Assembly: GCA_047495785.1 (NCBI GenBank)
Contig: JBLDXI010000003.1
Span: 434,001-498,000 of the forward strand
Reading direction: 5' to 3'
Length of the DNA stretch: 64,000 nt
Source of the DNA: Lepidodermella squamata
Taxonomy: Eukaryota > Animalia > Gastrotricha
Below are positions 3,001-53,816 of the stretch, in pieces. Within the stretch, counting starts at the first letter, position 1. Each line of letters starts with the position of its first letter. Both the position numbers and the translations under genes were made by a program. The notes under the pieces are model-generated. The model ran no database searches. It had not been told where the DNA came from and saw nothing but the letters and a program-made list of their open reading frames with translations.

Positions 3001-3795
3001 AAACCTAATTCTACAAATGATGTATACTTCAGCGATGCGAACTATGGCGAGAAGGCTACGATAATGTACTACGGAACGCGGCCCAATCGAACGCTGTTTT
3101 TCCACTGGGACCGGGTTGGGACCTTCACGTCATCGTGTGACTTGGACCTTTCGAAGTTCCCCTTCGACTCACAGACCTGTCAATTCACCTTCCTGTTGGA
3201 CGAACCGGCCACTTTTGTAGTAATAGGTGGGGTTTATGTTCATTCGTACGTCTCCCTTTCGAATGGAATTTGGACCCTAATGAATGCGCAAGCAAGTTAT
3301 GGAACCTGCTCATCTCCATCTCGAACTGGCGCGCCAGTTTCTTATGGCGATATTACCCTAACTTACAAACGCGACCCGACCTATTATATTGTTAACCTTT
3401 TGATCCCTTGCTATCTGCTGATAGCTCTCGCTCTTGGTTCCATTCTTATGGAACCTGAGCTTCCTGATAGGCCTGTTCTTTGTTCCACAGCTATGCTAGC
3501 TCTAGTCGTAGCTCAGTCTGACGTTATGGGCAGTGTCGCCTCAACTTCGAAACAACTACTTTTCACCAATTACGTGCTCATGCTGTCTGGTATTGTTGCG
3601 TCGATCGCTATCTACGAAATTTGGGCTACTACTGTTAGCATGACTGATCGGTTCAAGCAATTGAGCACGACGCCTGTTAATATCACCAAGTCGATTCAGA
3701 TACCAATTCTTCGAGCGATCGATTCGCTAGTTTTCGTCAATGCAGTAGAAGCGCTTTTGATTGCTAACCTATATCTAGCAGTTTCCTCAATGTAA
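1..3795 (+). CDS. Cys-loop ligand-gated ion channel subunit with large N-terminal extension, copy 1 (5' end outside window; multi-exon)
   Basis: Last exon encodes the Cys-loop CDLDLSKFPFDSQTC, a WxP motif (FWKP) and four hydrophobic helices. Upstream exons join in frame via GT-AG introns and one GC-AG intron (360-1474), and are paralogous to copies 2 and 3. Confidence 0.9.
417..1385. mobile_element. Non-autonomous hAT-like DNA element inserted in an intron of channel copy 1
   Basis: Imperfect TIRs (catggagtaatcgtaatggagctggaac / gttccaactccatttttattcctccatg), flanking 8-bp duplication ctcaattg/ctcaattc; the homologous introns in copies 2 and 3 are only ~120-140 nt. Confidence 0.7.
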
Positions 3796-9263: not shown

Positions 9264-12200
9264 ATGCATAGAAAGATCTTGTTTATCCTAAAAACGGCTT
9301 TGATTTCGGCAGTTATTGCAGGGTATGATCCCTCGCCGGATACAAACTCGCTACAATTACCAACAGGGTTCAGTGGACCGCCGTTGTATGTGCCGCGATT
9401 GTCGTTCGACGGTGAAAACGCGACGATCAACAGCAATGGCACATTCACAACGTACTACGCTGCCCGGAAAGTTGCGAATGGCTACCAGCTTAACAACATG
9501 TCGGCGGCGAATTCATCTCCAAACGAGACTCTCGCTATATTACAAGGACAGGTCAGTTCATGATATTCAAGACTGGGATTCATTTAAAGGTCAAGTCATC
9601 CTAAAGTTTAGTTTCAAAGGAATCACATGGAAGCGTCTTAGAACATGCTTATCCCAGACGAAAATCAGTAGACCGAGAGCTCAGTAGATCGTACGTAGAT
9701 CCAAAAGGCAAAATATCCGTCCAAAATTGTTTTTTTTCCGACCTATTGTCGATCTATTAAACTGGATCTACGGGCATCGATCCTGTGTAGGTCCTAATTT
9801 TACCATTCAATCTACGTAGGGTCGAACCCTTACGATCTACCCCAGTGTCAAATTTAGACCGAGCCATGGTCTACTTTTTTTCGACTGGGATGCAGGAAAT
9901 TTGAATTGCGAACCTTCAAATTTACAGCTGGGAATTTAAATTCTAATATGTTCGGTATTCTGGCTACTCCGAACTTGAGTTTAGGCCTGGGCTTCAATAT
10001 CAGGTAGCATCTATTGGAGGAATTGCATGGATTCATCGGCGTATATCGAAAACTTGAAATGCGATTTCTAGTTGATGAATAGGGAAACTTCCGTTTGTTG
10101 AAGCTCTTGCAATTGACCTTTTCACAGAAAGTGGGCAGTGACGGACTGAACCTCGTAAACTGGCGCATTGAGTATGAAGTTGAGCTTCGCTACAAAACCA
10201 GCGGACCAACCAAATCTTGGCTGGGGTTCTCTCTCTCATCGGATCGATTCATCCCGAGTAAGTATTTGAAACGCTCGATGTCAATAGTTTGGTCCACTTT
10301 CTTCATCAAAAGGTCTCTCGTCCGGTTCATCGTATTACGACGTGTTCACGAAGTATGGCTGGAGCTTACTGGCTTTTCTCAAGCTAGAACAGGGCGGCAA
10401 CACGGTGATCACCTGGAGGGCTACCATGGACAATGGCACTCCCGCGGCACCGCCGTTCAATGAACCAAAGAACACCTATTCCTTCAACACCAGCTGCGTT
10501 ATGCCATCCTCAGGCGTCGCGAAGTTTCGCATGATCTACCAAAGCGTATTCGACGTCATAACTGTGAGGGTCAATAGATAGCAATTTGTCTTACGACTGA
10601 TTTTTCGATATACAGATGATGGCTGTTCCGAGTTCTGGAACAGCTTCTTGCTCTTCCGTGGTGAGACTCACTGGCTACGCTGTTTACGTTGGCTATCAAA
10701 TGATGGATGGTTCGCTTACTCCAGCATTCTACGGAGTTAATGGCGCAGATGGCGATGTTCTCGTGAAAAAAATGCAAGTTGATTATTATTTCCAGTAATA
10801 TTGTGTATTCATATTCCTATAATACTTATTCCCATTACATAGTTGCCAATTTTTCCAAGTTTTTTTTAAGACATACTTACGTACGGTTTGTAGGTACCTT
10901 TGGGGCCTCACCGAAGATATGACATTCCTTCCAGATTTGTACACGCTCGCTCTGCCTGCTAACGTCGGGAAGACCACACTAGGCGGCTATGCCAGTTACG
11001 ACTACACGGGAGAATACAATTGGACAACAAGGCCGATTCTTCAGAATTCTTCGACAAGCTATGCTCTTATAAGCAGCACTCAGCAGCCTAGAGCATTTAG
11101 CTCCGCGGTAATTATATATAAATGGGGGAAATTCTTGTAAAGTTTGATCTATTGCAGTTCTACTACTCTTACTTCAAAGATTTTCGATTCGAGTTCGACT
11201 TTGACGTGACATGTAGCCCAACTAATGCTCAAGCCTGGCTGGGCATGATGTTCAATCTTAAGTCATACGTACCAGGAATGAGTAAGATCCTTTTAAGCAT
11301 CTTTTTAAAACACATACTTGCGTGCTATTTCCCAGTTAAACTCAACGGCTCCGCGGAATACAACGGCGTGAGTAATCTTATGGGCATCGGCATCTGGCAG
11401 AACCTGCTACCTAATCGCGGCGAGTTATATGTCGGTTATTTCCCGACAAAAACCGACAACGTCACGGTTCCACCCATTGGGACACTATCGTCACTTACCG
11501 GTTGTGGTGAAGCAGCGTTTTTCAATGCATCTGGTAGTGCTAGCTATCGCATCATTGTCCAACAAGTTAACGATTCTGTGAGCGTCGCCCTGGCGAAACT
11601 GCCCGCGAATGGATATACAACTTCCTACGACTGCATCACAAATTTCCCAGTTCCAGGATTTCGCAACAGTGCATTCACTTCATCTATGCTGTATTCCTTG
11701 CATGGAATGGGAAGCCCAAGTGCTGCAATTTCCTTTCGAAAAGCGTATGTTTTCGGTAAGACATGTTAACTATATGCCTGAGGATTTTGTGCTTCGTAGA
11801 CTGGTTTGGCAGCTGGCTGATGGAGTAGCCCCAACTCCAGTTCCTAGATCGACTACGCCAATTTCAACTAACTCGCCAATTTCTAGTAGTGAGACTTCAA
11901 CAAGCTCTAGTTACTCTACTAGTTATTCTACCAGAACAACAAGCAACCCCAGTTCTATGGCCTCCGCACTGCCAACGAAGCTATTAACTTCCCAGACTAA
12001 AAAACCAGCAACAACAAAGATTGTTACGGTTGATCCTGAAACAGCTGGGAGTGATAGATCTCCAATCCCTGATCCGCTGGATGGGAATTACGAGCCTCAA
12101 GTCCTTTATAAAGACCTCGAAGCCTGCCCATACCTGAGTGATCAACGCAGATCGCCTGAGTTGAATACAACCATTTATCTTACTTTTTCAGTTGAAAAGC

Positions 12201-13159
12201 TGGTTTCAATCGACCAAGTTAATAGTGAAATTTCGCTTTGGGGCTCTCTGCTGGTTCAATGGCCGATAATGTCTTGCGCCGCAGATTACACAGCCCCTGG
12301 CGCTGACGTCACAGAACGAGTAATTCCAGCCGATAAAGCTAATTTCTGGAAGCCGAAAATCATCAAACCTAATTCTACAAATGATGTATACTTCAGCGAT
12401 GCGAACTATGGCGAGAAGGCTACGATAATGTACTACGGAACGCGGCCCAATCGAACGCTGTTTTTCCACTGGGATCGCGTTGGGACTTTCACGTCGTCGT
12501 GTGACTTGGACCTTTCTAAGTTCCCATTCGACTCCCAGACCTGTCAATTCACCTTCCTGTTGGACGAACCAGCCGCTTTTGTTACCATCGGTGGGGTTTA
12601 TGTTCATTCGTATGCTTCTCTTTCGAATGGCATCTGGACCCTGCTGAATGCGCAAGCTAGTTACGGAACTTGCTCATCGCCGTCTCGAACTGGCGCGCCA
12701 GTTTCTTATGGCGATATTACCCTGACTTATAAACGCGATCCGACCTATTTCATTGTTAACCTGTTGATCCCTTGCTATCTGCTGATAGGTCTCGCTCTTG
12801 GTTCTCTTCTAATGGAACCTGAGTTTCCTGATAGGCCTGTTCTTTGTTCCACAGCTATGCTAGCTCTAGTTGTAGCTCAGTCTGATGTTATGGGCAGTGT
12901 TTCTTCAACTGCGAAACAGCTTCTTTTTACCAATTACGTACTCATGCTTTCTGGTATTGTTGCGTCGATCGCTATCTACGAAATTCTTGCCACTACTATT
13001 AGCTTGAGTGAGCGATTCAAGCGCTTGCGCTCTCAGCCTGTAAAAATATTTAAATCGGTTCAAATACCAATTATTCGGGCGATCGATTCGCTGATTTTCG
13101 CCAATGCAGTAGAGGCGCTTTTGATCGCCAACATATACCTAGCAGCTTCATCCATGTAA
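9264..13159 (+). CDS. Cys-loop ligand-gated ion channel subunit with large N-terminal extension, copy 2 (8 exons, ~975 aa)
   Basis: Signal peptide MHRKILFILKTALISAVIAG; exons approx. 9264-9551, 10128-10257, 10313-10563, 10616-10773, 10894-11107, 11158-11281, 11336-11744, 11800-13159; Cys-loop and 4 TM helices in the last exon. Confidence 0.9.
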
Positions 13160-18642: not shown

Positions 18643-21600
18643 ATGTTTCGAGACAGCTTTTTCATCATGCACACTGCTCTGATGTCAGCAGTTGCAGCAG
18701 GCTATGATCCATTGCCGGATACAAACTTGCTTCAATTACCAACCGGATTTAGAGGACCGCCGTTTTTTATGTCGCGGTGTTCGTTCGATGGTGAAGACGC
18801 GAATGTCAACATCAATAGCACATTCACACCATTATACGCAGCTCGGAAAGTTGCGAAAGGTTACCAACTAAACAACATGTCTGCCGCGAATTCAACGCCG
18901 AACGAAACCCTTGCTATATTACAAGGACAGGTGGGCTCAGGATGTACAACCTTGGGATTCAACTCTCATTTCCAGACCATCTATGCTTAGTTTGATGAAG
19001 GAATCACTAGAAAGTATTCGAGTTGAGTTTCCTTAGGACAAGGACAAGGTTTTATGTCAGGCCAAATTTCAGGAAAGTCTTACTCCCACATTTACACCTA
19101 GAAACGTAAATTCTTATATTTGGTCGAATTGAGGCTAATAATCCGAAATAGTCTTCGGGATTATGGTCTCAGATTCAGACTTCGGTTCCAATCAGGGTGC
19201 GAGTAATCATCGATGTTCGGTGACAACCGGGACCTCAGCCAGAGGAAGGCTAAAAAACCTACAGGTTGGGTGTTAGAAAAAACCTCAGCTCCCAGATCCT
19301 ACTTCGAAACTGGTTCCGATGTCCAATACCATTTATCGGAGGGATAAAAACCTGATAGCATCAAAAAGCTAGCGATTACTAGTTTCCGTTTGTTGACGAT
19401 TTTTCCTTTGACAGAAAGTGAGCACTGACGGGTTCAACCTGGTAAACTGGCGCATTGAGTATGACGTAGAGCTACGCTACAAAACGGGCGGATCAACCAA
19501 GTCGTGGCTCGGATTCTCTCTTTCATCAGAACGATTCGTGCCAAGTATGCGTTTGGAACGCTTACGCTAACAAAGTTGAAATGCGATTTCTTTCTTAAAG
19601 ATATCTCGGCTGGTTCATCGCATTACGACGTTTTCACGAGATTTGGTTTCGGCTTACTTTCGTTTCTCAAGCTAGAATCGGGCGGCAGTACGGTGATAAC
19701 TTGGAGGCCAGTCATGGACAATGGCCCTCCCACGGCACCGCCTTTCAATGACTCGAAAAACACTGACTCCGTTGACACTAGCTGCGTTATGCCGTCGTCA
19801 GGCGTCGCGAAATTTCGCATGATCTACCAAAGCGTGTTCGACGTCATAACTGTTAGTTTCAAAAAATAGTAACTCATCATACTGATTTTTTATTTACATA
19901 GGTGATGGCTGTTCCAAGTGATGGGGGAGCTTCCTGCTCCACCGTGGTGTACCTCTCTTACTTCGCTGTCTATGTTGGCTACCAAATGTTAGTTGGTACG
20001 CCGATTCCAACATTCTACGCTATTAATGGAGAAGATGGCGATGTTCTCGTAAAGAAAATGCAAGTCAATCTTTTATTTCTTATAACATTCCTCGAAGACC
20101 TGGAACTCCTAGCAACTAGCGTGCAACTCCGCGCGGAAAATCTCAGATTTTCCAGTTTCTGGCCTATTGTTATAACTTTGAGACTCACTGTGTATAGGTA
20201 CATTTGGGGCCTCACGGAAGATAGTCCGTCTCTTCCAGATTTGTACACGCTCGCTTTGCCTGCTAACGTTGGCAAGACGACTCTAGGCGGCTATATCAGC
20301 TACGACTACACGGGTGAGTTCAATCGGACAACCAGGCCAATCTATCCACGTGAGGCAAGCTATACGCTTATAAACAGCACTCAGCAGCCTAGAACATTCA
20401 ACACCCCGGTTATTATTTTCCCATGGAGAATCTCTGTACAATTTGATTGATTGCAGTTCCTATACAAATTCTTCAAAGATTTTCGAATTGAGTTCGACAT
20501 CGACGTGAAATGTAGTCAAAGTAATGCTCAAGCCTGGCTCGGCATGATCTTCAATCTCAAGTCATATGTTCCGGGAATAGGTGAGAGGAAACAAACATCG
20601 ATTTTAGCCATTTGCAAGCGTGATGTTTCCCAGTCAAACTCGGCGGCTCTTCGGAATACAATGGCGTGACTGATCTTATGGGTTTCGGCATCTGGCAGAA
20701 CCTACAAACTAATCGCGGCGAATTTTATGCCGGTTTTTATCCGAGCAAAACATACAACGTCACACTTCCACCCGATGGGTCGATATCACCACTAGGATGT
20801 GGCGATACAGAGCTTTTCGATTCATCTCGCAGTGCCAGCTATCGCATCGTTGTCCAGCAGGTTGACGATTCTGTAAGCGTTGCACTGGCGAAATCGCCCG
20901 CGAATGGATATACAACTTCCTACGACTGCATACAAAACTTCCCGGTTCCAGGATTTCGCAACAGCGCTTTCACCGGTTCTATGCTGTATTCCTTGCATGG
21001 AATAGGGAGTCAAACTGCTGCTATTACCATTCGTAGAATGTATATTTTTGTTAAGAATTATTTACTATGACTGATGGTTTATGCTTTCGTAGATTGGTTT
21101 GGCAGTTGGCTATTGGGGTAGCCCCCACGGTATTTCCTAGAACGACTACGCCCATTTCTAGTACATCATCAGCAACTAGCCATAATTCGACTGCTGAGAA
21201 AATAACTGACTCCGGTTCTACCACTAGCAGTGGGACATCAGCAAGCTCTAGTTATACTTCACAAACCAACCCTGGTTCCACGCCCTCTACGAAGTCAACG
21301 AAGCTATTGACAACTCAGACTAAGAAACCAGCAATTACAAACATTGTAACTGTTGATCCTGAAACAGCTGGGAGTGAAAAAAGTCCAATTCCTGATCCGC
21401 TAGATGGGAATTACGAGCCCTTAGTCCAGTACGAAGACCTGGAAGCATGCCCTTTCCTAAGTGAAAAGCGCAGATCGCCTGAGTTGAATACGACCCTGTA
21501 TCTAACTTTCTCCGTGGAAAAGTTGGTTTCTATCGACCAGGTTAACAGTGAGATTTCGTTGTGGGGCTCTTTGCTGGTGCAATGGCCGATAATGTCTTGC

Positions 21601-22482
21601 GCGGCAGAGTACACAGCCCCAGATGCTGACGTCACAGAGCGAGTCATTCCAGCTAACAAGGCCAATTTCTGGAAACCGAAAATTATCAAACCCAATTCTA
21701 CTAACGATGTCTACTTCAGTGATGTGTATTACGGGGAGAAGGCTACGATCATGTACTACGGAACGCGGCCTAATCGCACGCTATTTTTCCACTGGGATCG
21801 CGTTGGGACTTTCACGTCGTCGTGTGATTTGGACCTTTCGAAGTTCCCCTTCGACTCCCAGACCTGTCAATTTACCTTTCTGTTAGACGAACCGGCTGCT
21901 TTTGTTGCCATCGGTGGGGTTTATGTTCATTCGTATGCCTCTCTTTCGAATGGCATCTGGACCCTGCTGAATGCGCAAGCTACTTATGGTACTTGCTCAT
22001 CGCCATCTCGGACTGGGGCACCGGTTTCCTACGGAACGATTACCCTGACTTACAAACGCGACCCAACCTATTTCATTGTTAATCTATTGATCCCTTGCTA
22101 TCTCCTGATTGGTCTCGCTCTAGGTTCCCTTTTAATGGAACCTGAATTTCCTGATAGGCCTGTTCTTTGTTCCACCGCCATGCTAGCTCTAGTTGTAGCT
22201 CAGTCTGATGTTATGGGCAGTGTTTCCTCAACTTCGAAACAGCTTCTTTTTACCAATTACGTACTCATGCTTTCTGGCATTGTTGCGGCGATTGCTATTT
22301 ACGAAATTTTGGCCACTACTATTATCATGAGTGAGCGATTCAAGTATTTGCGTACTACGCCTGTTAATATCGCAAAGGCGATTCAGATGCCAATTATTCG
22401 AGGCATCGACTCGTTGGTTTTCGCCAATGCACTAGAAGCGCTTTTGATTGCCAACATATATCTAGCAGCTTCATCAATGTAA
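18643..22482 (+). CDS. Cys-loop ligand-gated ion channel subunit with large N-terminal extension, copy 3 (8 exons)
   Basis: Signal peptide MFRDSFFIMHTALMSAVAAG; same exon-intron structure and phases as copy 2; Cys-loop and 4 TM helices in the last exon. Confidence 0.9.
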
Positions 22483-29122: not shown

Positions 29123-31057
29123 TCATCCTCTGACTGGAACCGGGGTAACCGCCGCGACAGCTGGAACAGGAACCGGCTTCACTGCAGGGACTGCAGGGAC
29201 TGGGGGGATAGGAGCGGGCACTGGGGAAACAATAACAGCTGGCACAGGTCTCACCGGGGGAATAGTGGCGGCAGTTATTGGCCGAGGCGTTGTGGTAGTA
29301 GTAGTATTCGTCGTAGTCGTCGTAGGGGCGGGAGTAGTAGTCGTCGTGGTAGGTACCGGGGCGGGCTGCGTCGGGCTAGGACCTGGAGCAGGAGCTGGTC
29401 GTGGCGTCGTGGGTGGATCAGCCGGCGGCATTCCCATGTTAGCAATTCGAGGATAGTTGGCCGGCAGTCTCGAAGCTCCGAAGTTAGCAGTGTAGCCGTA
29501 AGCCGCCATCAACAGCTTATCGACCTTTTCAGGCTTAGTCATCATGAACAGCCCGATTGGAAGACCCTGCGGAGCATCAGGAGTAGGATCGCTGAAACCA
29601 AGCGGCACTGTTATTGACGGATAGCCGGTCCACGATGCTAGCAGCACCAAGTTGATGGGCGCCGTAGTCGAAGAATTCCACACTTTATTCGCGGCATCCG
29701 AGCCCAATTTAGCAGGGAAACTGGGAACCGTCGGCCAAATTATAAGATCATTATCGCCTAACAAAGGATTTATCGCGTTGGTAATCAGCGAAGCAACTTG
29801 GTCATTATAGAACTTTGTTTCTTTATCGCATTGGCCAGCGACCTTTCCCGCGTCGGAGACGCTTTGCCAGTTCTTCTGGTAATACTCTGGCAGTCTCGGC
29901 GTGTTGGGTTTAGGTTGCAGAACTTGATCAACAGATTGGAGTTGGCTGGAATTGAAGCGCTCGCGGTCATTCAGGTACGCATTTCTCCAAGCAGCGATGC
30001 AACTGGTTGTTCCAGTTTGGAGTAGGGTGAAGATCGGAGCTGCAGCTGAATTGAAGTCGATGGTCTGATTTTTCACAACCGCCCCAGCTGCAGTCATGTT
30101 CTGAGTCGCCTGAGTGAAAAGTGCTTGAATCTTCGGGTCGACTGAATAGGTTCCCAAGCCAGGCAGCGGGAATGAAACGTAAGTAAACATAGTGAAAACA
30201 CTGATTTTCGTCTTGTTAAGGCCGTCGAGCGTTGATACCCTTCCAGAAAACATACCAGGCTTCTTAAGCATACCATCCAAGATCAGCAACGCATCGTCAA
30301 TGTTGCGAGCTATCGGCCCCGTTACGTCTTGCAACAAACTGTTAGGCATAACTCCGTCCTGGCCGTTGACTGACTTGATCAAATCAAGAGGAGGGCGGAT
30401 TCCGACCAAATTGCCTGTTGAAGATGGCAAATTGATTGACACCCCAGTTTCAGTCCCGATTCCTCCAACTGCCAGCATGGCATTAGCTGCAGCTGAGTTG
30501 CCACCACTTGATCCGTAGGTAGTGTATTCCCTAGCGTAAGGATTTCGGATTTGGCCACCAGTTTCAGAATTTCCCCACGCCTCTTTATCAGCCATCGGTG
30601 ACATATTGGCCTTGGCGATAAAAATTGCACCCTGATCCTTGCAATTCTTTACTACAGTCGCGTCTTTATTCGGGACTTGATTGCTGAACACCGAAAGGCC
30701 GTTTGTCGTCGCCATACCAACAACGTCAATGTTGTCCTTAGCAACCAGAGGAGCGCAGTGGAGGGGGCCTTTCAGCTTTCCATATGTTGTGAAGTACGAG
30801 TCCAGGGCTAGGGCCTGTTCGATGGCTTTCTGGTTGACCGCAACAATAGCACCAGTGTCGTTTTGAAAGCCATATCTGTTGATACGCTGAAGGTACCCAG
30901 CAACGATACCGGCGCAAGTTACATATCGCTGTTTGATCGCAGCTTGAATGTCGGAGATCTTCGCGATCGTGTAGTCGAAATTAGCTGGGGTAACAGGAGG
31001 CGCTTGCTGGCTGGATAGACCAGCTAGAAAACTAAAAATTATCAGGGCTCGAAGCAT
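29123..31057 (-). CDS. Secreted amidase-signature family enzyme with Pro/Thr/Val-rich tail, copy A (intronless)
   Basis: Signal peptide; GPLHCAPLVAKDNIDV (Lys), YGSSGG (cis-Ser), GTETGVSINLP (Ser nucleophile), GYPSITVPLG..GLPIGL. Confidence 0.92.
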   Translation of the reverse strand: MLRALIIFSFLAGLSSQQAPPVTPANFDYTIAKISDIQAAIKQRYVTCAGIVAGYLQRINRYGFQNDTGAIVAVNQKAIEQALALDSYFTTYGKLKGPLHCAPLVAKDNIDVVGMATTNGLSVFSNQVPNKDATVVKNCKDQGAIFIAKANMSPMADKEAWGNSETGGQIRNPYAREYTTYGSSGGNSAAANAMLAVGGIGTETGVSINLPSSTGNLVGIRPPLDLIKSVNGQDGVMPNSLLQDVTGPIARNIDDALLILDGMLKKPGMFSGRVSTLDGLNKTKISVFTMFTYVSFPLPGLGTYSVDPKIQALFTQATQNMTAAGAVVKNQTIDFNSAAAPIFTLLQTGTTSCIAAWRNAYLNDRERFNSSQLQSVDQVLQPKPNTPRLPEYYQKNWQSVSDAGKVAGQCDKETKFYNDQVASLITNAINPLLGDNDLIIWPTVPSFPAKLGSDAANKVWNSSTTAPINLVLLASWTGYPSITVPLGFSDPTPDAPQGLPIGLFMMTKPEKVDKLLMAAYGYTANFGASRLPANYPRIANMGMPPADPPTTPRPAPAPGPSPTQPAPVPTTTTTTPAPTTTTTNTTTTTTPRPITAATIPPVRPVPAVIVSPVPAPIPPVPAVPAVKPVPVPAVAAVTPVPVRG

Positions 31058-35109: not shown

Positions 35110-36912
35110 TTATCGACCGAATAGATTGCTGAAAAAATTGGTAACAGCCGGAGGCAAAGCTGGAAGAGGCGGGAGGGCTGGAACTGCAGGAATAGCAGGA
35201 AGTGGAGGCAAAACCGGCGCGGGCTGAATTGGGCCAGGGCCTGGTTGAGGCGGCGGTGGTCTCGGCGTTGTAGGTGGATCTCTGGGCGGCAGTCTCTCGC
35301 AATCAAGTCGAGGATAGTTGGCCGGCAGTTTCGAGGCTCCGAAGTTTGCAGTGTAACCGTAGGCCGCCTTCAACATTTTATCAACCTTTTCAGGCTTAGT
35401 CATCATGAAAAGCCCGATTGGAAGACCCTGCGGAGCATCAGCAGTAGGATCGCTGAAACCAAGCGGCACAGTTATCGACGGATATCCAGTCCACGAGGCT
35501 AACAGGACTAAATTAATAGGTGCTGTAGTCGCGGATCCCCAGTCTTTGTTCGCAGCATCCGAGCCCATCTTAGCAGGGAAGCTGGGAACTGTCGGCCAAA
35601 TGATTATATCGGCATCGCCCAACAGCGGATTTATCGCGTTCGTGATCAGCGAGGCAACTTGGTCGTTGTAGGCCTTGGTTTCTTTATCGCACTGGCCAGC
35701 GACCTTTCCTGCGTCGGAGACGCTTTGCCAGTTCGTCTGGTAATAGCTCGGTAGTTTTTTCGATTGCAGAACTTGATCAACAGTTTGGAACGAGCTGGAA
35801 TTAAAGCGCGCGGTGTCACCCAGGTAGGCATTTCTCCAAGCAGCGATGCAACTGGTTGTTCCAGTTTGGAGTAGGGTGAAGATCGGAGCTGCAGCTGAAT
35901 TGAAGTCGATGGTTTGATTTTTCACCACCGCCCCAGCTGAAGCCATGTTCTGAGTTGCTTCGGTGAACAGGGCCTGAATCTTCGGGTCGACTGAATAGGT
36001 TCCCAAGCCAGGTAGCGGGAATGAAACGTAGGTAAACATGTTGAAAATGTTGATTTTCACTGAATCGAGGCCATTACGGCTGGAATCCACCCCGTAGAAC
36101 ATACCAGGTTTCCCAAGCATGCCATCAAGAATCAACAACGCATCGTCAATATTGCGCGCAATCGGCCCAGTTACGTCTTGCAACAGACTGTTGGGCATAA
36201 CCCCATCCTGTCCCTTGACAGACTTGAGCAGGTTGAGAGGCGGACGGATTCCGACCAAATTGCCTGTTGAAGAAGGCAGATTGATTGAAACCCCAGTTTC
36301 AGTCCCGATTCCACCAACCGCCAGCATGGCATTAGCCGCAGCTGAGTTGCCGCCACTTGATCCGTAGGTGGTGTACTCCCTGGCGTAGGGATTTCGGATT
36401 TGGCCACCAGTTTCAGAATTTCCCCACGCCTCTTTATCAGCCATTGGTGACATGTTGGCCTTGGCAATGAAAATTGCACCCTGATCCTTGCAATTCTTCA
36501 CTACAGTCGCGTCCTTATTCGGAAATTGATTTTTGAACGCCGATAGACCATTTGTCGTAGCCATACCAACAACGTCAATGTTGTCCTTGGCAACCAGGGG
36601 AGCGCAGTGGAGGGGGCCTTTCAACTTTCCAGTCGTCGTGAAGTACGAGTCGAGAGCTAGCGCTTCGGCGATGGCGGCATTTGCATTGGTCGCAACAATA
36701 GCACCAGTGTCGTTTTGATAGCCATATCTATCGATGCGTTGCAGGTACCCAGCAATAATGCCGGCGCAGGTTACATATCGCTGCTTGATCGCGGCTTGAA
36801 TGTCGGAGATCTTCGCAATCGTGTAGTCGAAATTAGCTGCGGGAGGAATAGGAGGCGCTTGCTGGCTGGATAGACCAGCTAGAAAACCGATGAAAATCAA
36901 GGCTCGCAACAT
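35110..36912 (-). CDS. Secreted amidase-signature family enzyme with Pro-rich tail, copy B (intronless)
   Basis: Near-identical catalytic domain to copy A; the homologous start MLRAL is at 36912; shared upstream block attacgcctctt...cacttagctcatccttgagtcaataa. Confidence 0.92.
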   Translation of the reverse strand: MLRALIFIGFLAGLSSQQAPPIPPAANFDYTIAKISDIQAAIKQRYVTCAGIIAGYLQRIDRYGYQNDTGAIVATNANAAIAEALALDSYFTTTGKLKGPLHCAPLVAKDNIDVVGMATTNGLSAFKNQFPNKDATVVKNCKDQGAIFIAKANMSPMADKEAWGNSETGGQIRNPYAREYTTYGSSGGNSAAANAMLAVGGIGTETGVSINLPSSTGNLVGIRPPLNLLKSVKGQDGVMPNSLLQDVTGPIARNIDDALLILDGMLGKPGMFYGVDSSRNGLDSVKINIFNMFTYVSFPLPGLGTYSVDPKIQALFTEATQNMASAGAVVKNQTIDFNSAAAPIFTLLQTGTTSCIAAWRNAYLGDTARFNSSSFQTVDQVLQSKKLPSYYQTNWQSVSDAGKVAGQCDKETKAYNDQVASLITNAINPLLGDADIIIWPTVPSFPAKMGSDAANKDWGSATTAPINLVLLASWTGYPSITVPLGFSDPTADAPQGLPIGLFMMTKPEKVDKMLKAAYGYTANFGASKLPANYPRLDCERLPPRDPPTTPRPPPPQPGPGPIQPAPVLPPLPAIPAVPALPPLPALPPAVTNFFSNLFGR

Positions 36913-37142
36913 GATATAATGTTTTGAGGAATCAGCAGGGGGCATAATGCGACCTATATATGGTATTCAGCAATTACGCCTCTTCTTACACTTAGCTCAT
37001 CCTTGAGTCAATAAGGTGGTGTCATAACCAGGGATTTTAACCACTCAATGCTCACGTGAGCAAATAAACAGACATGTTTTGTACGTACAAAATCGCTGAG
37101 TAAATAATCTTTACTTCTTACAGCCCAGTTACCGACAAGATA

Positions 37143-38664: not shown

Positions 38665-39141
38665 ATGTCGCTTCTTAAATTTTACGCCATCGCCGCTTTG
38701 ACTGTGGTCTGCTTCGCTCACGTCACTTGTTCGTTTAATTCGCCAAGTTTTTTGTTCGATTTTTCTGTTCCGTTCTTGCGTAGATGGATTGATTTGTTGG
38801 TCTGGAACTGGCAATACACAATCGGGCTGGACCAATTGCAGTATCACGAGCGGCCACTGCACGGTAAAACTTCAATTTATATACAGCTTGCAATGTCCTA
38901 GCGATGCTTTGCTTTCCAGAAAATTGTTACCAAGACAAGCGGCGTTGAAACGTACTCTAAATCGTGCATTTCCACGTGTACAGCTTCGACAAACACGTGC
39001 GCCTCTGGCGTTTGCGTCGACGTATTTTGCTGCGATTCCGACAACTGCAACTCGGCTATCATGGGCAAAGCCCTGTCCGGCTACGTCATCGCCGCGTCGG
39101 CTCTTCTCAGCCTCGGAGCATTTGCGGCATACCGATTCTGA
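38665..39141 (+). CDS. Ly6/uPAR three-finger protein 1 (signal peptide, GPI-type tail; 3 exons)
   Basis: LICWSG...C...C|KIVT...C...C...C....C...CCDSDNCN followed by a hydrophobic C-terminus; TATA-like element upstream. Confidence 0.88.
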
Positions 39142-44240: not shown

Positions 44241-44966
44241 ATGACCAAACAACGAATGCGAAAAAACTTTATTCGCATTACGCACAAAATGAGCGATTCG
44301 TACCGAAGATTTTGCGAGGCCTGTTGGCTCGGCGAGCTGAACTACGTCACTGAAAACATTTCGACAACCGAATCCATCAACCAGCTTCACGAGCCGAAAG
44401 GCTACGCGCCACTGCACCTCGCTAGTTTCAACGGCCATTTCGAGGTCGCGAAGATTTTGCTAGAGAACAAGGCTGAGGTGGATCTGGTTAGCAAGCATGG
44501 CGAGACGAGTTTGATGGTCGCGAGTTCACGGGGCCATTTTAAAATCGCGAGGATACTGCTAGAATCCGGAGCCAATGTCCACGCAAAAAATTCTTCGGAG
44601 GTCAAAGAATTCAGGGGCTCTACGGCCCTTCACTATGCTGCTAGAAGTGGCCGGCCCGATGTAGCTCGACTACTGATCCAACACGGGGCGAATGTTCACG
44701 ATGTTAATGAAAACGCGAAAACGCCTCTCATCGAGGCTGCTAGGAGTGGCCACTTGGAAATGTGCCGCATGTTGGTGTTAGACTACGGCGCTGCGTCGGA
44801 TTTGTCGCTATCTGCGAGAGCTAGCCAGGCGCTGCATGAGGCTGCGATTTCAGGCCACGATGCTATAGTCAAGTTTCTGATCGAGCATAGCAACAACAAG
44901 AATGCAGCGAATTCGGAAGAAGCGAGTGAAAGAACCGAGTTTATGATGGCCTTTCTGTTTCTCTGA
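44241..44966 (+). CDS. Ankyrin repeat protein
   Basis: 5-6 repeats of G.TPLH.A...GH.....LL..GA.V. Confidence 0.9.
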   Translation: MTKQRMRKNFIRITHKMSDSYRRFCEACWLGELNYVTENISTTESINQLHEPKGYAPLHLASFNGHFEVAKILLENKAEVDLVSKHGETSLMVASSRGHFKIARILLESGANVHAKNSSEVKEFRGSTALHYAARSGRPDVARLLIQHGANVHDVNENAKTPLIEAARSGHLEMCRMLVLDYGAASDLSLSARASQALHEAAISGHDAIVKFLIEHSNNKNAANSEEASERTEFMMAFLFL

Positions 44967-46861: not shown

Positions 46862-48121
46862 TTGACAATGCCGAAACGATCGGGCGACCATCTAGCTGGG
46901 CGAGATGCAACTCTCGATTTGCCTAAACTGCATGTGAACTTCCGCTGTATAAGGAATCTGGATGAAAATCAGTTTGAAGTTCTAGTAATTCAAATAGCTA
47001 GAAAATTGGAAGTCATAAAGCGACTGACGAAGGACCGCGTAATTCTGGACCGGCTTTATCTAAAGGCCAACGCTTTGGGCTACCTTGAAATTGTTGAAAT
47101 GGTTTTTCGCCGAGTACGAGGTGTTTCTTCTCATCTTTCTGCAATCGAAGTGGCATCGAGATACGGCCACGTTCAAATACTTCATTTTATTATTGGCAAT
47201 TCAGCTTCTGTCGATCTAGTCGCCCGCTGGAGGCCAAAAATACGACATTTCGCCAAACTCAGGCAAATTTTGGACGAATTCAACCTTGCCCAGGCGAATT
47301 TTGATTTAATTGAATCGATCTGTTTCCTGGTATCATGCTACTTCGGGGACGTGATATCCTTTGATCGAATTATCGCAGGAAAATCGGAACCTTCTCGAAG
47401 GGCCTTGTTCGCCTTCAGAACTCCCCTAACTCAACAAACCGGGCTTATGATAGCTTGTGTTCAAGGTAGGTTAAATCTTGTGAAAAAATGGTTCGAACTG
47501 GACTCTGGCGTCACTGATGGAGCGAACGGTCTCCTCCAGGCATGCCTAGCTAACAGGCCTGATTTGACAACCCCTTACTACTGCTACGTTGATATTGCCG
47601 AATTTATCTTGAATTCCGGCGCTGGTGTTAATGTCTGCAATGCCTTCGGCAGGTCTTTGGTTGACCTTCTTGTGGATCGCTTCATATGCTCAAGGTCTTC
47701 GATGGTTGAAAACGAGACGTCTACTTACACTCTACACTTGAACCGTTTGATGTCTCTACTATTCAAATCTGGGGCTAACAAATACCTCTCAAAGGCTGCG
47801 AGCGAGTTATTGACCATGGAAGTAGCTTTGAACTATCATGGCGTGGGGACTATTCGTAGCATGTGGCTGTCGAGTCTCTGTGGTTCCAATTTCGATTGTA
47901 TTTCAGCTAGAAATACGTACTTCAAGCTACGAGTCTCGCATTCGAAAATGACTTCGCTTAATGAACATCTTGGATCGATGTACCCTTTGACACTCCAGGA
48001 TGCGTGTAGAGCTGTTTGCCTCTCCAGAATGCAGACTGGAATCAGAAAACGCGAATATTGTATAAATAGCTTGGACTGCCTCCCCACGATACTGAGAGAA
48101 TTCCTCAAATTCAGGAACTGA
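46862..48121 (+). CDS. Ankyrin repeat and SOCS-box (ASB-like) protein
   Basis: Degenerate ankyrin motifs (QTGLMIACVQG, LNSGAGVN) and C-terminal PLTLQDACR...LPTILREFL. Confidence 0.8.
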   Translation: MTMPKRSGDHLAGRDATLDLPKLHVNFRCIRNLDENQFEVLVIQIARKLEVIKRLTKDRVILDRLYLKANALGYLEIVEMVFRRVRGVSSHLSAIEVASRYGHVQILHFIIGNSASVDLVARWRPKIRHFAKLRQILDEFNLAQANFDLIESICFLVSCYFGDVISFDRIIAGKSEPSRRALFAFRTPLTQQTGLMIACVQGRLNLVKKWFELDSGVTDGANGLLQACLANRPDLTTPYYCYVDIAEFILNSGAGVNVCNAFGRSLVDLLVDRFICSRSSMVENETSTYTLHLNRLMSLLFKSGANKYLSKAASELLTMEVALNYHGVGTIRSMWLSSLCGSNFDCISARNTYFKLRVSHSKMTSLNEHLGSMYPLTLQDACRAVCLSRMQTGIRKREYCINSLDCLPTILREFLKFRN

Positions 48122-48757
48122 ATAAAGCTAAGCCAAGACTTTTTTTGGGACCTAGGTCAAATTAGAAGTGTTCACGAGCAAAAAATGTATGCAGTAGCGA
48201 AAATTTGTATTGAAATTCTCGGATTTTCACAATTTTTTTTCTTCACTGATTTTCTTCACAAATTATGTTATTTAGACACTCCTCAACTGTTCGGCGCAAT
48301 GCAAGGCAGATTGCAGCTAAATTCGCTTCATCCATCTTGAATCCTCGTAAAGCGTGAAGCGGGCTATATTGAAAATAATTGACTGGCGCAACTACAATTG
48401 GCTGGCGAGTGTGATCGAGAAGTAGCTTTCATAGGCCCTAATATAGCCTCATGTTTCTTGGGCATAATGATTACTATTCATTCAAAAGCTATGGAAAAAA
48501 TACGCAGCTGTAGTTGAATGGGAAACGCGACAAATAGCGATGCTTTAATTGCCTCTCATTAGCTCGACTTTGGCTTGAGTAAACACGAATAAGCAAATTC
48601 AAAGAAAGTAATGAGAAGTTTTATTTACTTCCGCCATAAATAATTCAGAGCGATTAATAAAAGCTTATTTTTTGTTCATAAAGGTGTGACGCGTAACGCA
48701 ATCGTTGCGCCTAGCGAAACTGCTATCCCAAGAATAGCTTGAATTCTTGAAACAACG

Positions 48758-50755
48758 ATGATATCGCAAATTTTAACATTTCTATTTCTCGGAAAATTTG
48801 TCCGGTAAATTAAGCAACCATCCAATTCGAGTAATACTACAAAACATTTTGCATAGGGCCGCCGAAATTACGAACCCGAACTGGCCAGATCTGTGAGTTG
48901 ATTAGAAATTTAGAGTAATAATAACACATTTCTGCAGATCCCGGCAGCATGGGTATTCGAATAGGTAAAGTTAATATCTTTTTACTGAAAATCACTGCAG
49001 CCGAAAAACTGTACTTAATTGCAGTAGCTTGCCAGACTTCCTTAAATCCAACAACTGGAATAGTTCTATGATGCAAGCAGTTTTAAAAATAAATAGTTAA
49101 CACAGTTATCATTTTTATCAGGGTTGCGTTACCTTCCAACTGGTCTAACAATCAATGGAACAATTCGTAAGTATTTAAAAACTTGTCGAATTTCAAATTA
49201 AAAATAGATATACAGCATATGGAATCAACCTTGGATGGGAGGTTTCAGGTGAGACTAAGTCGCAGCTCGAATTCGGCATATGTGACTTGTATTTTTCCCG
49301 CATAGAAATATATCGCTGGAGTCGTCAAGTTATTCGGCTAACGTTCCAACCTGGAATTACAGCAATAACTCGTAATAATTCGCTGATTTTTCGTTTACTT
49401 TGATGAGAACTGAGAATTTACAGACCTTTCTCGCCATGGTTGAATTCGAGTTCGTACAACCCTCAACAGCCATTCACATCTAACAATGGGTAATATTCAT
49501 TTGAAAATCGAGTGTTGTTTTTGAGCTTTACATCGGAAAGCTGGAATCTCACTTGGAATAACGCATCTGGGTACGGGTGAGTATTCAGCCAAACTACTTT
49601 ATCAATGTCTATCGGCATCGATCTTGATTGAAGGGGCAACCTATCCCAAGTTCCAGCGAACTGGTCAACAATTGCAGCCCCATTCTATGGAAGGCCCAAC
49701 TCGTGAGATCAGACAATGAAGACTGAAGCTGATCTTGACACATTTAAAATCATTTAGCCAACCATATATCAGCCCATTTTCCAATCCGCCGTGGAATGCC
49801 TCCTTTTACGGGTAGATAAACGTTTATTGAATCATTGATTATGACTGTAAAAAGCTAAATAGATGGAACCAGAATTGGACCAACAATACTGGAGCCATGT
49901 GCGTCTGATTTTTATTCTTCATTTTGTAATGCTTATGTTAGATTTAGGAACAGCTCGATTCCAGCAGCTCCGAACTGGGCAAATTTGTCGCGTCAATTTT
50001 ACCCAAACATCAGCTCGTGAGTGACGACAAGCTTCGAGCCCTATTTTCGCCCTTAACTTTGATGTTTACAGGCCGTTCTCGCCGTGGCTGAATACTAGCT
50101 CTTTTTATCGATGGAACTTGACCAACTTCAAGTTAGTCGATTCGCTAAGCTCAGAAAATGTCATTGAATTCTGTGTTTAAGTAACTCACGCCCGTCACCA
50201 ATCGAAATCTATCGGTATTACAGGCCTCTGTAACATTGTGGGTTACAATCATTTTCTAAATTATCTAAGGAACAAGGCCTTCCTGAATGCTTCAAACCCA
50301 GTCAGCTCTCAGCCCAACAACTAGTAATATCATCTCAGATTTTGTGTTGATGATCATGTTACCATTTTTTGAAACCAGTGGTTGGAATCAGACTTGGAAC
50401 ATCAGCAATCCTAACTGGTAAGACTTTGAACGGAATCTCGCGATTCATTTCGCCTTCTTGTACAGGAATAATCTATCTGGAAATGCATGGAGTGCTTCGC
50501 AGTCAACAAACTTTTCATCGCCAATTTACTATAACAACTCGTAAGTGGCAATCGGTTAGTCGAATTGTCGAAGTGCTAATTTCTAATTGTTTCTCAGCGC
50601 TTATCAGCCGTGGATGAACTACTCAAATCCATGGAATACCACATTCTTCAACTTCTCGAATCAGTTAGTTTCGGTAGAAAGAAACTAGCTGCTAAAGCAG
50701 ATTTGTGCTTTATTTTTTTTATCGATGGATAAGCAACCCTTTCTCTCAGCGCTGA
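48758..50755 (+). CDS. Secreted Trp/Asn/Ser/Pro-rich glycoprotein encoded by ~20 small symmetric phase-2 exons (~331 aa); gene A
   Basis: Hand-spliced model: signal exon MISQILTFLFLGKFVR, 18 internal exons of 27-75 nt (all multiples of 3), ~50-nt introns (one GC-AG at 49073-49121), no internal stop. Confidence 0.85.
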
Positions 50756-51154
50756 AAGTAGAACAGTAAACCTGCCAGTAATGCAGCTAAACTTGGTTTA
50801 ACATTTGGCGCTCGCTCGCGCGAATGCTTCATTTTCTACATACATAACACACTTCCGCTTTCAAATCCTCCTTTTTACCTTATTTATTTTCTACGAAAAG
50901 AACATTGGTCTTGTACTCACAACGAATTCAAGTTGAACAATAGCTACTTGAAGTTTTTGCGCGGATCTGCTCAGGCAAATCACGTCTATGATCTTGGGCA
51001 ACGGCACGTCTGCGATGCTTGGCAAAATTGTAGATTTTATTGATTTTGAAATACTTAAGTCTGTGTTGCAATTCTTATCAAATCAGCGCATAATTGCGCG
51101 AATCATCAAAGCATTATATTAAAATGTATTAATTCACGAAAAATACGCGCTTGT

Positions 51155-51742
51155 TTATATCACGAAATAAGCAGCAATGAACAATGAAGCCGTGATTGCG
51201 GCCTTTGCGCTAGCCATCGCCAAACCAGCAGAGTTGCACAGGTCAGTGTAACAATTGTCGATGTTACACTGGTTTGTGTTGCAATGGTCGGTGCTGCACC
51301 CGCCGGTAGTGCATAGGTCCTTGTTGCACAGGTCAGTGTTGCAGGCGCAATACGCGGTGGCTAAGTCTGGGTCTGTCTCGAATGCGCAGCCGAGGCCGAG
51401 ATTGGTACTCAGGCAAAACTTTGTTGTAACGCGTGCATTGCCAGATTCGACTGTAGTAATTGCGCAATTAACGCAGCCATCCATCACGTTATACTCGGTA
51501 GCGTTACCTCCTGCATAGCACTTGATGGCAGCTAAATTTTTACAAAAAATTGAATAATCAGTTTGTTGTTTCAGTTTAACAAGAAATACATGAAAAATGT
51601 GTTTTGAAATTCCCAATTAATTTCACTTGGAAATTTGTTAATTTACTTGAAACCAATTCCCACCCACCAGATTATAGATAGTATTACCTGAGCATGCAAT
51701 TGATGCAGCAAATAGTATTACAAAATATATGAAACGAGCCAT
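51155..51742 (-). CDS. Ly6/three-finger protein 4 with reiterated C-terminal Cys motif (2 exons)
   Basis: Signal exon MARFIYFVILFAASIACS, IKCYAGG..., CACNTDLCNKDLCTTGGCSTDHCNTNQCNIDNCYTDLCN, hydrophobic tail. Confidence 0.85.
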
Positions 51743-52195
51743 TTGCAATTTTTTTGTAGCTTCACAGATTTGTAATGCTACACGCTCAATGGTGGCACTT
51801 GCTATAAATTGTTTGGGCGTGGCTACTGATTGTAGTCCGGTGATGCATGGTTTTTACTGTTATCGCTATTTTTATGTCGTGTGGTGGTGCGGTCACGTGG
51901 TCGCGAAACTGCCAAGCAATATTTATAACATATGGTCGTACTTAAATAACTGAAGACCCTCCTTTATTACTTGATAGCGCGACACGAACGAATATATTAG
52001 CAGGTGGAGATGGGCAATAAAGCCACCACGTGCAATGGGCAAATATATCTTGACTGCTATATTTCGACTGCTACTGCGATTATTGCAAAAAAAATACGCG
52101 CGAACTCACCACCACACCCCCACCCAAACAAGAAAGTACTGCACACGTAAAACCTAGCATTAATAGCCAGCTGATAATTCAGCATTAATAACCAG

Positions 52196-53816
52196 CCTTA
52201 TCACAGAGAATGAGAATCTTGGAAGAGGCTATCTACAACCCCACTGGTTGTAAATAACTTGCTATTTGCACATGAGCCGTTAAAATGGGAAATCTCTGTC
52301 CAAAACTATGTCATTGTACATGAAAATGACTGCGTTTTGAATACCGTATGGGTGGTTAATTTGGACAAAATGGTTATACGCGTAACTGTGTTCTATCAGT
52401 GAGGTTTGAAAAATTCCCAATTTTGCAAAATTCGAAAAAATCAGTTTATCCATATTGAGAAATTCCTTTATCCGACGATATAAAATTGGTAGGGTAAATA
52501 ATTTATTTAGATTTTCCTGGCTCGAACAATTATTATTTGCCTGAATTATTTCTGAATTAAATAGCGCTGTGAGAGAATTCAAAGACCAATAATATGCACA
52601 GCCGGAAATAATCAGAAAATTGAAATAAATTATTTACCCTACAAATTTTATATCGTCGGATAAAGGAATTTCTCAATATGGATAAACTGATTTGTTCAAA
52701 TTTTGCAAAATTTTTCCGAAAGAGCAAACCGTGACAGAAGAATGGCAATTTTGCCCGAAAACACGAAATCTAGCACTTTTTGGCGAATTTTAGAAAATTA
52801 TCCATAAGGGACCACGAAGTGTATACCTGGTATCATTAGATAGAGGGCCGCTTCTAGTATCTATGAGCAGACATTTTTTTCAGAAGTGCACCATCTATTT
52901 TTATAAACTCGAGCAACCCGAATGGTTACAGCTCGTTCAACAGCCAGTAAGTTTTGTTGAATTATTTTTCGGAACAGAAATATTCATCGCATTGCCAAAC
53001 AGACCTTGGTATCCGCAGTATTCGAACAGGTAGTGTTTTCTATTCTTGACATTGAATGTTCTTCAAGTTTTCTGTAACAGTTCGGTCATAATAGACAATT
53101 CAGCGCCATTTAACTGGTTTGTTCGGTAGCTTGCCAATGGTTAACAGACTTAGCTCGATTTGATTGCGTAGGACATTGCCCACCAACCTGTCGAATTCGT
53201 GAGTTTTGAGCATCGACAAATGGCTTGGGTATAACTCGAATCCCAATGCTGTAGCTTCATTCCAGCAAATTGGACGAACAGCGACACAAGAAATCAGTAA
53301 ATTTAACTATCATGAATTTTATCAAACTGCGATATTTGTGGTTTAGGTCCGAGACGCCGTGGTGGCTGAATGCTGAGTAAGTTTTGTAAAATCTGAAAAG
53401 TATATATCGAACATTTTGCATTAAGATCTACAACTGCCAACCCTCAACCACTGAATAATGTCAAGTATGGTTATTCATACCGTAGTTTTGAATCTTCCTG
53501 TATCAGGCTTTTTTTTTGCTCAAGCCCGGAAGCGTTGCTGGCTTTGCTTAACTCAGCGAATGTTTTCAACGCAACTTTCGGCGGATTTTTTCCGGAAAAT
53601 GATGGCACGGACAACCAGGGTGTGTCGAAGCTGTGCATTTTCCTCGTACGATCATATCCGCCATCTATGAATCCGAACGCCACTTTTGGCAGCTACGGGT
53701 TGAATTATACGATGCCGAAACCTGCGTCCCGAATTCCGTGAGTGATTTCTGAGCCTTGCGGCACTAGCTTACTGATTTTACGGAATAGATTTCGAATGTC
53801 GACGCCAAGGATCTAA
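52196..53816 (+). CDS. Second small-exon, all-phase-2 gene encoding an Asn/Ser/Pro/Trp-rich protein; gene B (5' end uncertain)
   Basis: Exons approx. 52196-52249, 52884-52946, 53003-53029, 53081-53116, 53172-53198, 53255-53296, 53347-53376, 53426-53464, 53526-53737, 53789-53816 join in frame with GT-AG phase-2 introns. Confidence 0.72.
52421..52710. repeat. ~90-bp inverted repeat (fold-back element) within a long intron of gene B
   Basis: 52421-52510 is the reverse complement of ~52621-52710 (atcagtttatccatattgagaaattcctttatccgacgatataaaa). Confidence 0.85.

Follow-up and report, generated by a model that had tools for sequence, protein, structure and literature searches.

Mucins carry O-glycans on Pro/Thr/Ser repeats and polymerise via Cys-rich domains, and tropoelastin is a low-complexity secreted protein that derives from tandemly duplicated exons of the same phase. 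Low-complexity proteins of the latter origin constitute a described class, exemplified by the SCPP genes (PMC3632108, PMC9122587). Hyosophorins, located in the cortical alveoli of eggs, consist of 80-90% carbohydrate, a very high load that is N-linked in some species (PMC3528131). Schistosome micro-exon genes (MEGs) consist for the most part of symmetric exons no longer than 36 nt and vary by splicing (PMC8293314, PMC4350168), and their mature proteins show raised dN/dS (PMC4350168).

The gene described here occupies 48758-53816 on the forward strand of the window, which is the whole 64,000-nt stretch of Lepidodermella squamata DNA that was analysed. The revised model comprises 28 exons and 27 phase-2 introns, with a CDS of 1,464 nt encoding 487 aa and a stop at 53816. 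The gene is real, spliced and expressed, with the exon structure given below through exon 19; in the ~28-exon model the junctions of exons 1-20 are backed by RNA and exons 21-28 are predicted. On balance, it is probably one gene of ~28 exons, spliced mostly in order, whose product is a secreted, densely N-glycosylated structural protein of ~487 aa grown by exon duplication.

Gene structure and transcript evidence

The reading frame starts at the ATG at 48758, and exon 1 (48758-48804, 47 nt, phase 2 out) encodes a signal peptide predicted from hydropathy, with a mean of 2.97 for the hydrophobic 7-mer. It is followed by 18 internal exons of 27-75 nt (exons 2-19), each a multiple of 3, through which the frame stays open. 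Introns 1-18 are all in phase 2, 45-60 nt in length and of the GT-AG type, except for one GC-AG intron (49073-49121). The model was compared with Logan contigs of two runs aligned to window positions 47600-52600, namely X1, an RNA-type run from 2015 and thus a single RNA data set, and X2, a DNA-type run from 2024; contigs of this kind lose rare variants.

RNA joints on both sides were found for exons 2 (48857-48892, 36 nt), 3 (48938-48964, 27 nt), 4 (49025-49072, 48 nt, preceding the GC-AG intron), 5 (49122-49166, 45 nt), 12 (49863-49898, 36 nt), 13 (49948-50016, 69 nt), 14 (50072-50131, 60 nt), 15 (50182-50214, 33 nt), 16 (50270-50323, 54 nt) and 17 (50379-50417, 39 nt). A joint at the 5' side was found for exons 6 (49216-49248, 33 nt, also backed by depth and similarity), 8 (49424-49489, 66 nt), 10 (49634-49702, 69 nt) and 18 (50466-50540, 75 nt, with an 8-letter loose end in addition), and one at the 3' side for exons 7 (49306-49371, 66 nt, also by depth), 9 (49541-49576, 36 nt) and 11 (49758-49811, 54 nt), the last two of which are backed by similarity as well. 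Exon 19 (50598-50663, 66 nt) is marked by RNA loose ends on both sides and by depth.

Seen from the introns, the joints listed for X1 cover introns 1-5, 7, 9 and 11-17, and intron 18 is represented by the 8-letter loose end; at introns 6, 8 and 10, exon bases account for the whole of the binned X1 depth and the introns take no share of it. Depth per exon base is ~35.5 over exons 1-9 and ~42 over exons 13-19. None of these joints occurs in X2, whose listed contigs are colinear with the window over 48472-49564 and 50271-50841 and keep the introns. Since the RNA contigs bypass the predicted introns, joining the exons in order, while the DNA contigs retain them, the structure of exons 1-19 is real and expressed, and the earlier note's proposal of a signal-peptide exon followed by 18 small symmetric exons between ~50-nt phase-2 introns is borne out by both the sequence model and the RNA contigs. 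Exon 10 opens with GG in the window (49634-49635) and with TA in X1, one change being silent and the other converting Gly to Ser; this is an allele difference at a splice junction.

The 3' end, the long intron and its surroundings

The earlier note had closed the gene with a 20th exon and a protein of ~331 aa. Exons 1-19 of that proposal stand on RNA joints and depth, and its last exon does not: a 20th exon ending at the TGA at 50755 would rely on acceptors of 1.2-1.8 bits, give 326, 337 or 338 aa and lie in a region without X1 depth. Instead, an X1 contig runs 255 letters beyond 50663, and the 30 letters shown all match the sequence from 52884 onward exactly. The acceptor at 52883 is canonical and the best-scoring one of the gene (9.4 bits), and its join to exon 19 preserves both phase 2 and the frame, which defines intron 19 (50664-52883, 2,220 nt, phase 2, GT-AG) and extends the former length to a predicted 487 aa.

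A candidate gene at 52196-53816 had been considered as a separate second gene, for which no first exon was found and whose start is bypassed by the RNA contig; because RNA joins exon 19 to 52884, it is assigned here as the 3' third of the same gene. It is very unlikely that there are two genes or a main short form, with gene A ending at ~50755-50801, a second phase-2 gene beginning at ~52196 and the RNA join reflecting a chimeric assembly or read-through at a low level. In favour of this, the acceptor at 50749 is good (7.6 bits) and would close the frame at 50801 after 336 aa, and an expressed antisense gene sits between the two halves, but X1 depth is absent over 50664-50772, the contig connects exon 19 with 52884, where the acceptor is canonical and keeps the phase, and no convincing ATG and signal-peptide exon was found upstream of 52884 outside the antisense gene.

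Under the single-gene model, the exons beyond exon 19 were read from the sequence and compared with a dynamic-programming parse that allowed any phase and used splice scores trained on introns 1-18 only. Exon 20 (52884-52946, 63 nt) is matched by RNA over its first 30 nt and set by the parse for the remainder. The following exons are predicted from sequence, namely exon 21 (53003-53029, 27 nt, with a possible donor 3 nt downstream), which resembles exon 3; exon 22 (53081-53116, 36 nt), which was found by the phase-free parse; exon 23 (53172-53198, 27 nt); exon 24 of the PANW type (53255-53296, 42 nt), with z of 4.5-4.7 to exons 5 and 10; and exon 25 (53347-53376, 30 nt). Judged by cumulative exon lengths, the 255 X1 letters past 50663 would extend into exon 26. 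The phase-free parse placed exons 20-25 all in phase 2, and the best chains elsewhere in the window were of mixed phase; it serves as a rough check, as it mis-cut the RNA-known exons 14-16 and cut differently after 53426. The cuts from 53426 onward are thus ambiguous, and the predictions of exon 26 (53426-53464, 39 nt), exon 27 (53525-53737, 213 nt, with two NATFG motifs and the only Cys of the protein) and exon 28 (53789-53816, with the TAA stop) are uncertain, the frame chosen there being favoured because the two NATFG sequon motifs share it. The 60-nt intron between exons 26 and 27 (53465-53524), alone among the modelled introns, can be read through in frame without a stop; it has the weakest donor, and its retention would add 20 aa including a second Cys.

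Directly after exon 19, a repeat-like stretch at 50701-50801 (+) contains FYRW and PFS motifs and, at 50749, an acceptor resembling that of exon 19, with no X1 depth; it may be the remnant of a copied exon or serve as a 3' end of minor use. Further into intron 19, a nested Ly6/uPAR (Quiver-like) gene lies on the opposite strand at 51155-51742 (-), with two exons and an intron at 51532-51687 seen as an RNA joint, and encodes 143 aa with 15 Cys and hydrophobic ends. Its X1 depth is 218, versus ~40 for the host gene, and its protein matches Pfam QVR weakly (E 0.0098, under the family cut-off). The end of this protein carries four successive C-x-TD-x-CN-type motifs, of which the family has one, followed by a GPI-like tail. 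Seven Ly6/three-finger C-terminal motifs cluster in the window, at 39028, 41293 and 43575 (+), 51349, 54527 and 55844 (-) and 57357 (+), near three ORFs for Cys-loop channel ligand-binding domains (2548-3795, 11609-13159 and 21067-22482). A local Ly6 duplication into a once-short intron would be the simplest account. Upstream of the nested gene, at 51850-52122 (-), X1 contigs align with 90-93% likeness and one of their loose ends reads like a Ly6 C-terminus, so these are probably transcripts of paralogous loci. The intron also harbours a foldback or MITE-like element (52419-52712) with 98-nt arms that are 95% complementary, and X2 depth is high over 52276-52600.

The 64-kb window, which has a GC content of 39-47%, contains no paralog of the gene elsewhere by tblastn. 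Two ankyrin-repeat ORFs lie directly upstream (44241-44966 and 46862-48121, +), the second of which is covered by X1 and ends ~640 nt before the ATG. Two amidase-family genes with long ORFs are located at 29123-31057 and 35110-36945 (-); a search with one of them returned Logan proteins (46-48%), followed by amidases of mostly bacterial type (~30%), and a horizontal origin of these genes is possible.

Homology searches were run exon by exon, and blanks are weak evidence here because the majority of exons fall below a searchable length and full-length relatives are concealed by the length filter. On these terms, Pfam returned no match for eight exons, exon 27 had no match among 5.8 billion proteins, the ESM Atlas gave no usable match for the exons tested, and JGI metagenome contigs gave none at the exon level. 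Two hits of exon 27 among 1.84 billion representatives were rejected, since both add up several matches to a long repeat protein, a single stretch scoring ~23 bits. The gene is best read as a lineage-specific orphan, a status that searches at the exon level test weakly.

Exon duplication and exon skipping

All 26 internal exons of the model are symmetric, 18 of them with RNA support. At a frequency of 0.33, the chance probability of 27 phase-2 introns is below 1e-13, or below 1e-8 if 18 are counted as independent. Phase 2 is the rarest intron phase, accounting for 21% in human (PMC3632108).

The recurrence of exons in triplets, taken by the earlier note to imply duplication, was confirmed by exon similarity. 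Four diverged triplets were recognised, consisting of exons 6-8 (triplet A), 9-11 (B), 12-14 (C) and 17-19 (D), in which exon 6 is of the WN.xW type and exon 8 of the PFSPW type. Grouping by similarity yields the families 8/11/14/19, 10/13 (with 5 and 24) and 6/9/12/17, with z of 3.3-6.8 for 8/11/14/19, 10/13 and 9/12/17, including 6.8 between exons 8 and 14 and 5.4 between exons 10 and 13. Exons 2, 3, 15, 16 and 20-26 are weakly similar to the triplets, and duplication is supported for about half of the exons. Exons 2 and 3 joined together resemble exon 13, which suggests intron loss or gain within a repeat. The introns are barely alike: comparison of 325 pairs yielded a handful of short, dispersed matches, which points to old duplications. 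Tandem duplication of same-phase exons (PMC3632108) accounts for the uniform phase, and skipping is thus not needed as an explanation. The gene would have grown by repeated tandem duplication of small symmetric phase-2 exons, followed by drift and some intron loss, because only same-phase exons duplicate without a frameshift.

The earlier note had further proposed a MEG-like system for combinatorial variation, a claim that the present data do not support: 22% of the CDS lies in small exons, no skip joint is listed, introns are ~52 nt and the loss of exon 17 alone creates a TAG stop. It is unlikely that selection keeps the exons symmetric so that, by regulated or stochastic skipping, a surface or secreted protein is made in a range of glyco-variants. 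What speaks for such a diversifier is the symmetry of every internal exon, even of those barely similar to the triplets, and the fact that 365 of the 378 possible exon joins are stop-free, the other 13 creating a stop. The hydrophobic N-terminus, consistent by hydropathy with a signal peptide, also fits the MEGs, whose products carry such a peptide and are either secreted or anchored in the membrane. Over exons 1-9 (392 exon nt), the window differs from X1/X2 by three nonsynonymous changes and one synonymous change, three of the four exonic differences listed for X2 altering an amino acid; a similar number occurs in the introns, and the differences, too few for a test, are compatible with weak constraint. 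Against a diversifier, only 10 of the 26 internal exons are of 36 nt or less, no skip joint is present among the X1 joints listed, and exon depth stays even over the length of two long contigs; as this type of assembly loses rare forms, low-level skipping may still occur. Across eukaryotes, skipped exons tend to be flanked by long introns (PMC6142364), and introns 1-18 of this gene, at 45-60 nt, disfavour it; introns of ~52 nt would be recognised across the intron, which would make skipping rare.

An in-frame 54-nt phase-2 cassette candidate in intron 19 (52196-52249, +) could add to the case for a diversifier, being bypassed by the X1 contig, but it has no RNA depth and loose criteria yield six such candidates in that intron. 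It may be a chance occurrence, or what is left of an exon that the adjoining repeat has separated from the gene.

There is a slim chance that selection-kept phase-2 cassettes, most of them with 1-4 N-glycan sites and an aromatic neighbour, build a splice-variable N-glycan coat, as a MEG-like system that evolved independently in a free-living micro-animal. If true, such a coat would have arisen although the 50-nt introns of the genome are expected to work against skipping, and frequent skipping, if shown, would carry MEG-type diversification beyond parasites. Either way, the gene offers a clean test case for whether exon symmetry stems from duplication history or from selection for skipping. 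It is MEG-like in layout at most and is not classed as a MEG.

Protein composition and comparison with known systems

Exons 1-19 encode no Cys, 23 Trp and 30-31 N-x-S/T sequons, in good agreement with the earlier hand count of no Cys, ~20 Trp and ~30 sequons; the full model has a single Cys, and its predicted polypeptide backbone is 53 kDa. The core consists of 21% Asn, 17% Ser, 10% Pro and 8% Trp, with 4.9% D/E/K/R, and by composition the protein has Asn+Ser+Pro of ~43% and a GRAVY of -0.75. Hydropathy reveals one clear hydrophobic stretch, at the N-terminus, and no transmembrane or GPI-like C-terminal end in the 487-aa model.

In total, 40 sequons were observed versus 16.4 +/- 3.3 in shuffled sequences, none of 10,000 shuffles reaching 40; their median spacing is 9 residues, and 46% of all Asn lie in sequons. 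An aromatic residue stands at position -2 in 17 of the 40 sequons and at -1 in 14 (Trp in 9), whereas the non-sequon Asn residues show no enrichment (9 of 47 at -2, 6 of 47 at -1). The P values of both enrichments are optimistic because the repeats are not independent of each other. Sequon density together with aromatic neighbours is a signature of selection for dense N-glycosylation, with glycan occupancy predicted from the sequence.

Under the favoured reading of a secreted structural protein, most sequons would gain N-glycans in the ER, giving an extended, nearly uncharged, Cys-free "N-glycan brush". The Trp, Phe and Tyr residues beside the sequons might stack on core sugars or serve as stickers between chains, and the glycans might hold the Asn- and aromatic-rich chain back from aggregating before secretion. 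Turn-stabilising aromatic sequons have aromatic residues in a set register to the sequon. The term "aromatic sequon" itself appears in the reference list of PMC10830103. The fixed register seen around the sequons here, as in that motif, and the 8% Trp of the core would also suit repeats arranged as a regular scaffold of beta-turns or as a beta-solenoid, whose exposed Trp and Tyr bind polysaccharide (e.g. chitin) or other glycans, making the protein a cross-linker or a lectin-like adhesive with no disordered brush. Such a scaffold is rather improbable, as the repeat lengths are irregular, Pro reaches 10%, no disulfide is present and no Pfam or Atlas match was obtained among the exons tested.

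Returning to the brush-like protein, its product would most likely be a structural or hydrating part of an extracellular layer, such as cuticle, egg envelope, mucus or adhesive secretion; its tissue and role (cuticle, egg coat or envelope, mucus, glue) are a guess. The gene, which ORF-based annotation missed, is a candidate for the uncharacterised extracellular layers of this gastrotrich (cuticle, egg coat, glue). As a material, a chain free of Cys that bears an N-glycan site every 9-12 residues in aromatic register would be of unusual design and, if true, the N-linked counterpart of the mucin brush.

With schistosome MEGs, which comprise 25 families, the gene shares a predicted signal peptide, many symmetric exons, the lack of a recognisable domain and a probably lineage-restricted occurrence. 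MEGs, however, are built chiefly of exons not exceeding 36 nt, have documented splice variants and belong to a parasite under immune attack (PMC8293314, PMC4350168), whereas in this gene internal exons have a median of 43.5 nt, small exons make up 22% of the CDS, introns are ~52 nt, the exons are mutual duplicates and the contigs showed no variant.

Hyosophorins, found in the cortical alveoli of fish eggs (PMC3528131), are likewise secreted as tandem glycopeptide repeats, the carbohydrate load of the present protein being predicted. Hyosophorin repeats are identical short peptides, in contrast to the diverged, exon-bounded and Trp-rich repeats here, and no tandem repeat was called at the locus. 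The likeness to mucins lies in the extended, glycan-dense secreted chain rich in Ser and Pro that is predicted here, and the difference in N-sequons, few Thr (5%) and one Cys.

The SCPP family, e.g. ameloblastin (PMC3632108, PMC9122587), is similar in being secreted and of low complexity, with a single intron phase and small tandem-repeated exons, and its layout recurs here in consecutive same-phase exons (27 phase-2 introns) and inter-exon similarity. Products of this class are mostly disordered, and the present protein may be so too, judged by its composition. The gene falls outside the SCPP family proper, as all its introns are in phase 2, whereas SCPP introns are in phase 0 for the most part (PMC9122587) and the SCPP genes descend from sparc-like genes. 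Exon-level searches found no sequence homology to SCPP or tropoelastin, and none is expected. SCPP motifs are either sites of phosphorylation or rich in Pro and Gln, in contrast to the repeated aromatic plus N-x-S/T motif here. The SCPP/tropoelastin class has an extracellular matrix role, which for this gene is a proposal. On the best reading, the gene belongs as a variant to a known class, that of low-complexity secreted proteins with symmetric exons, and combines phase 2 with an aromatic-sequon motif.
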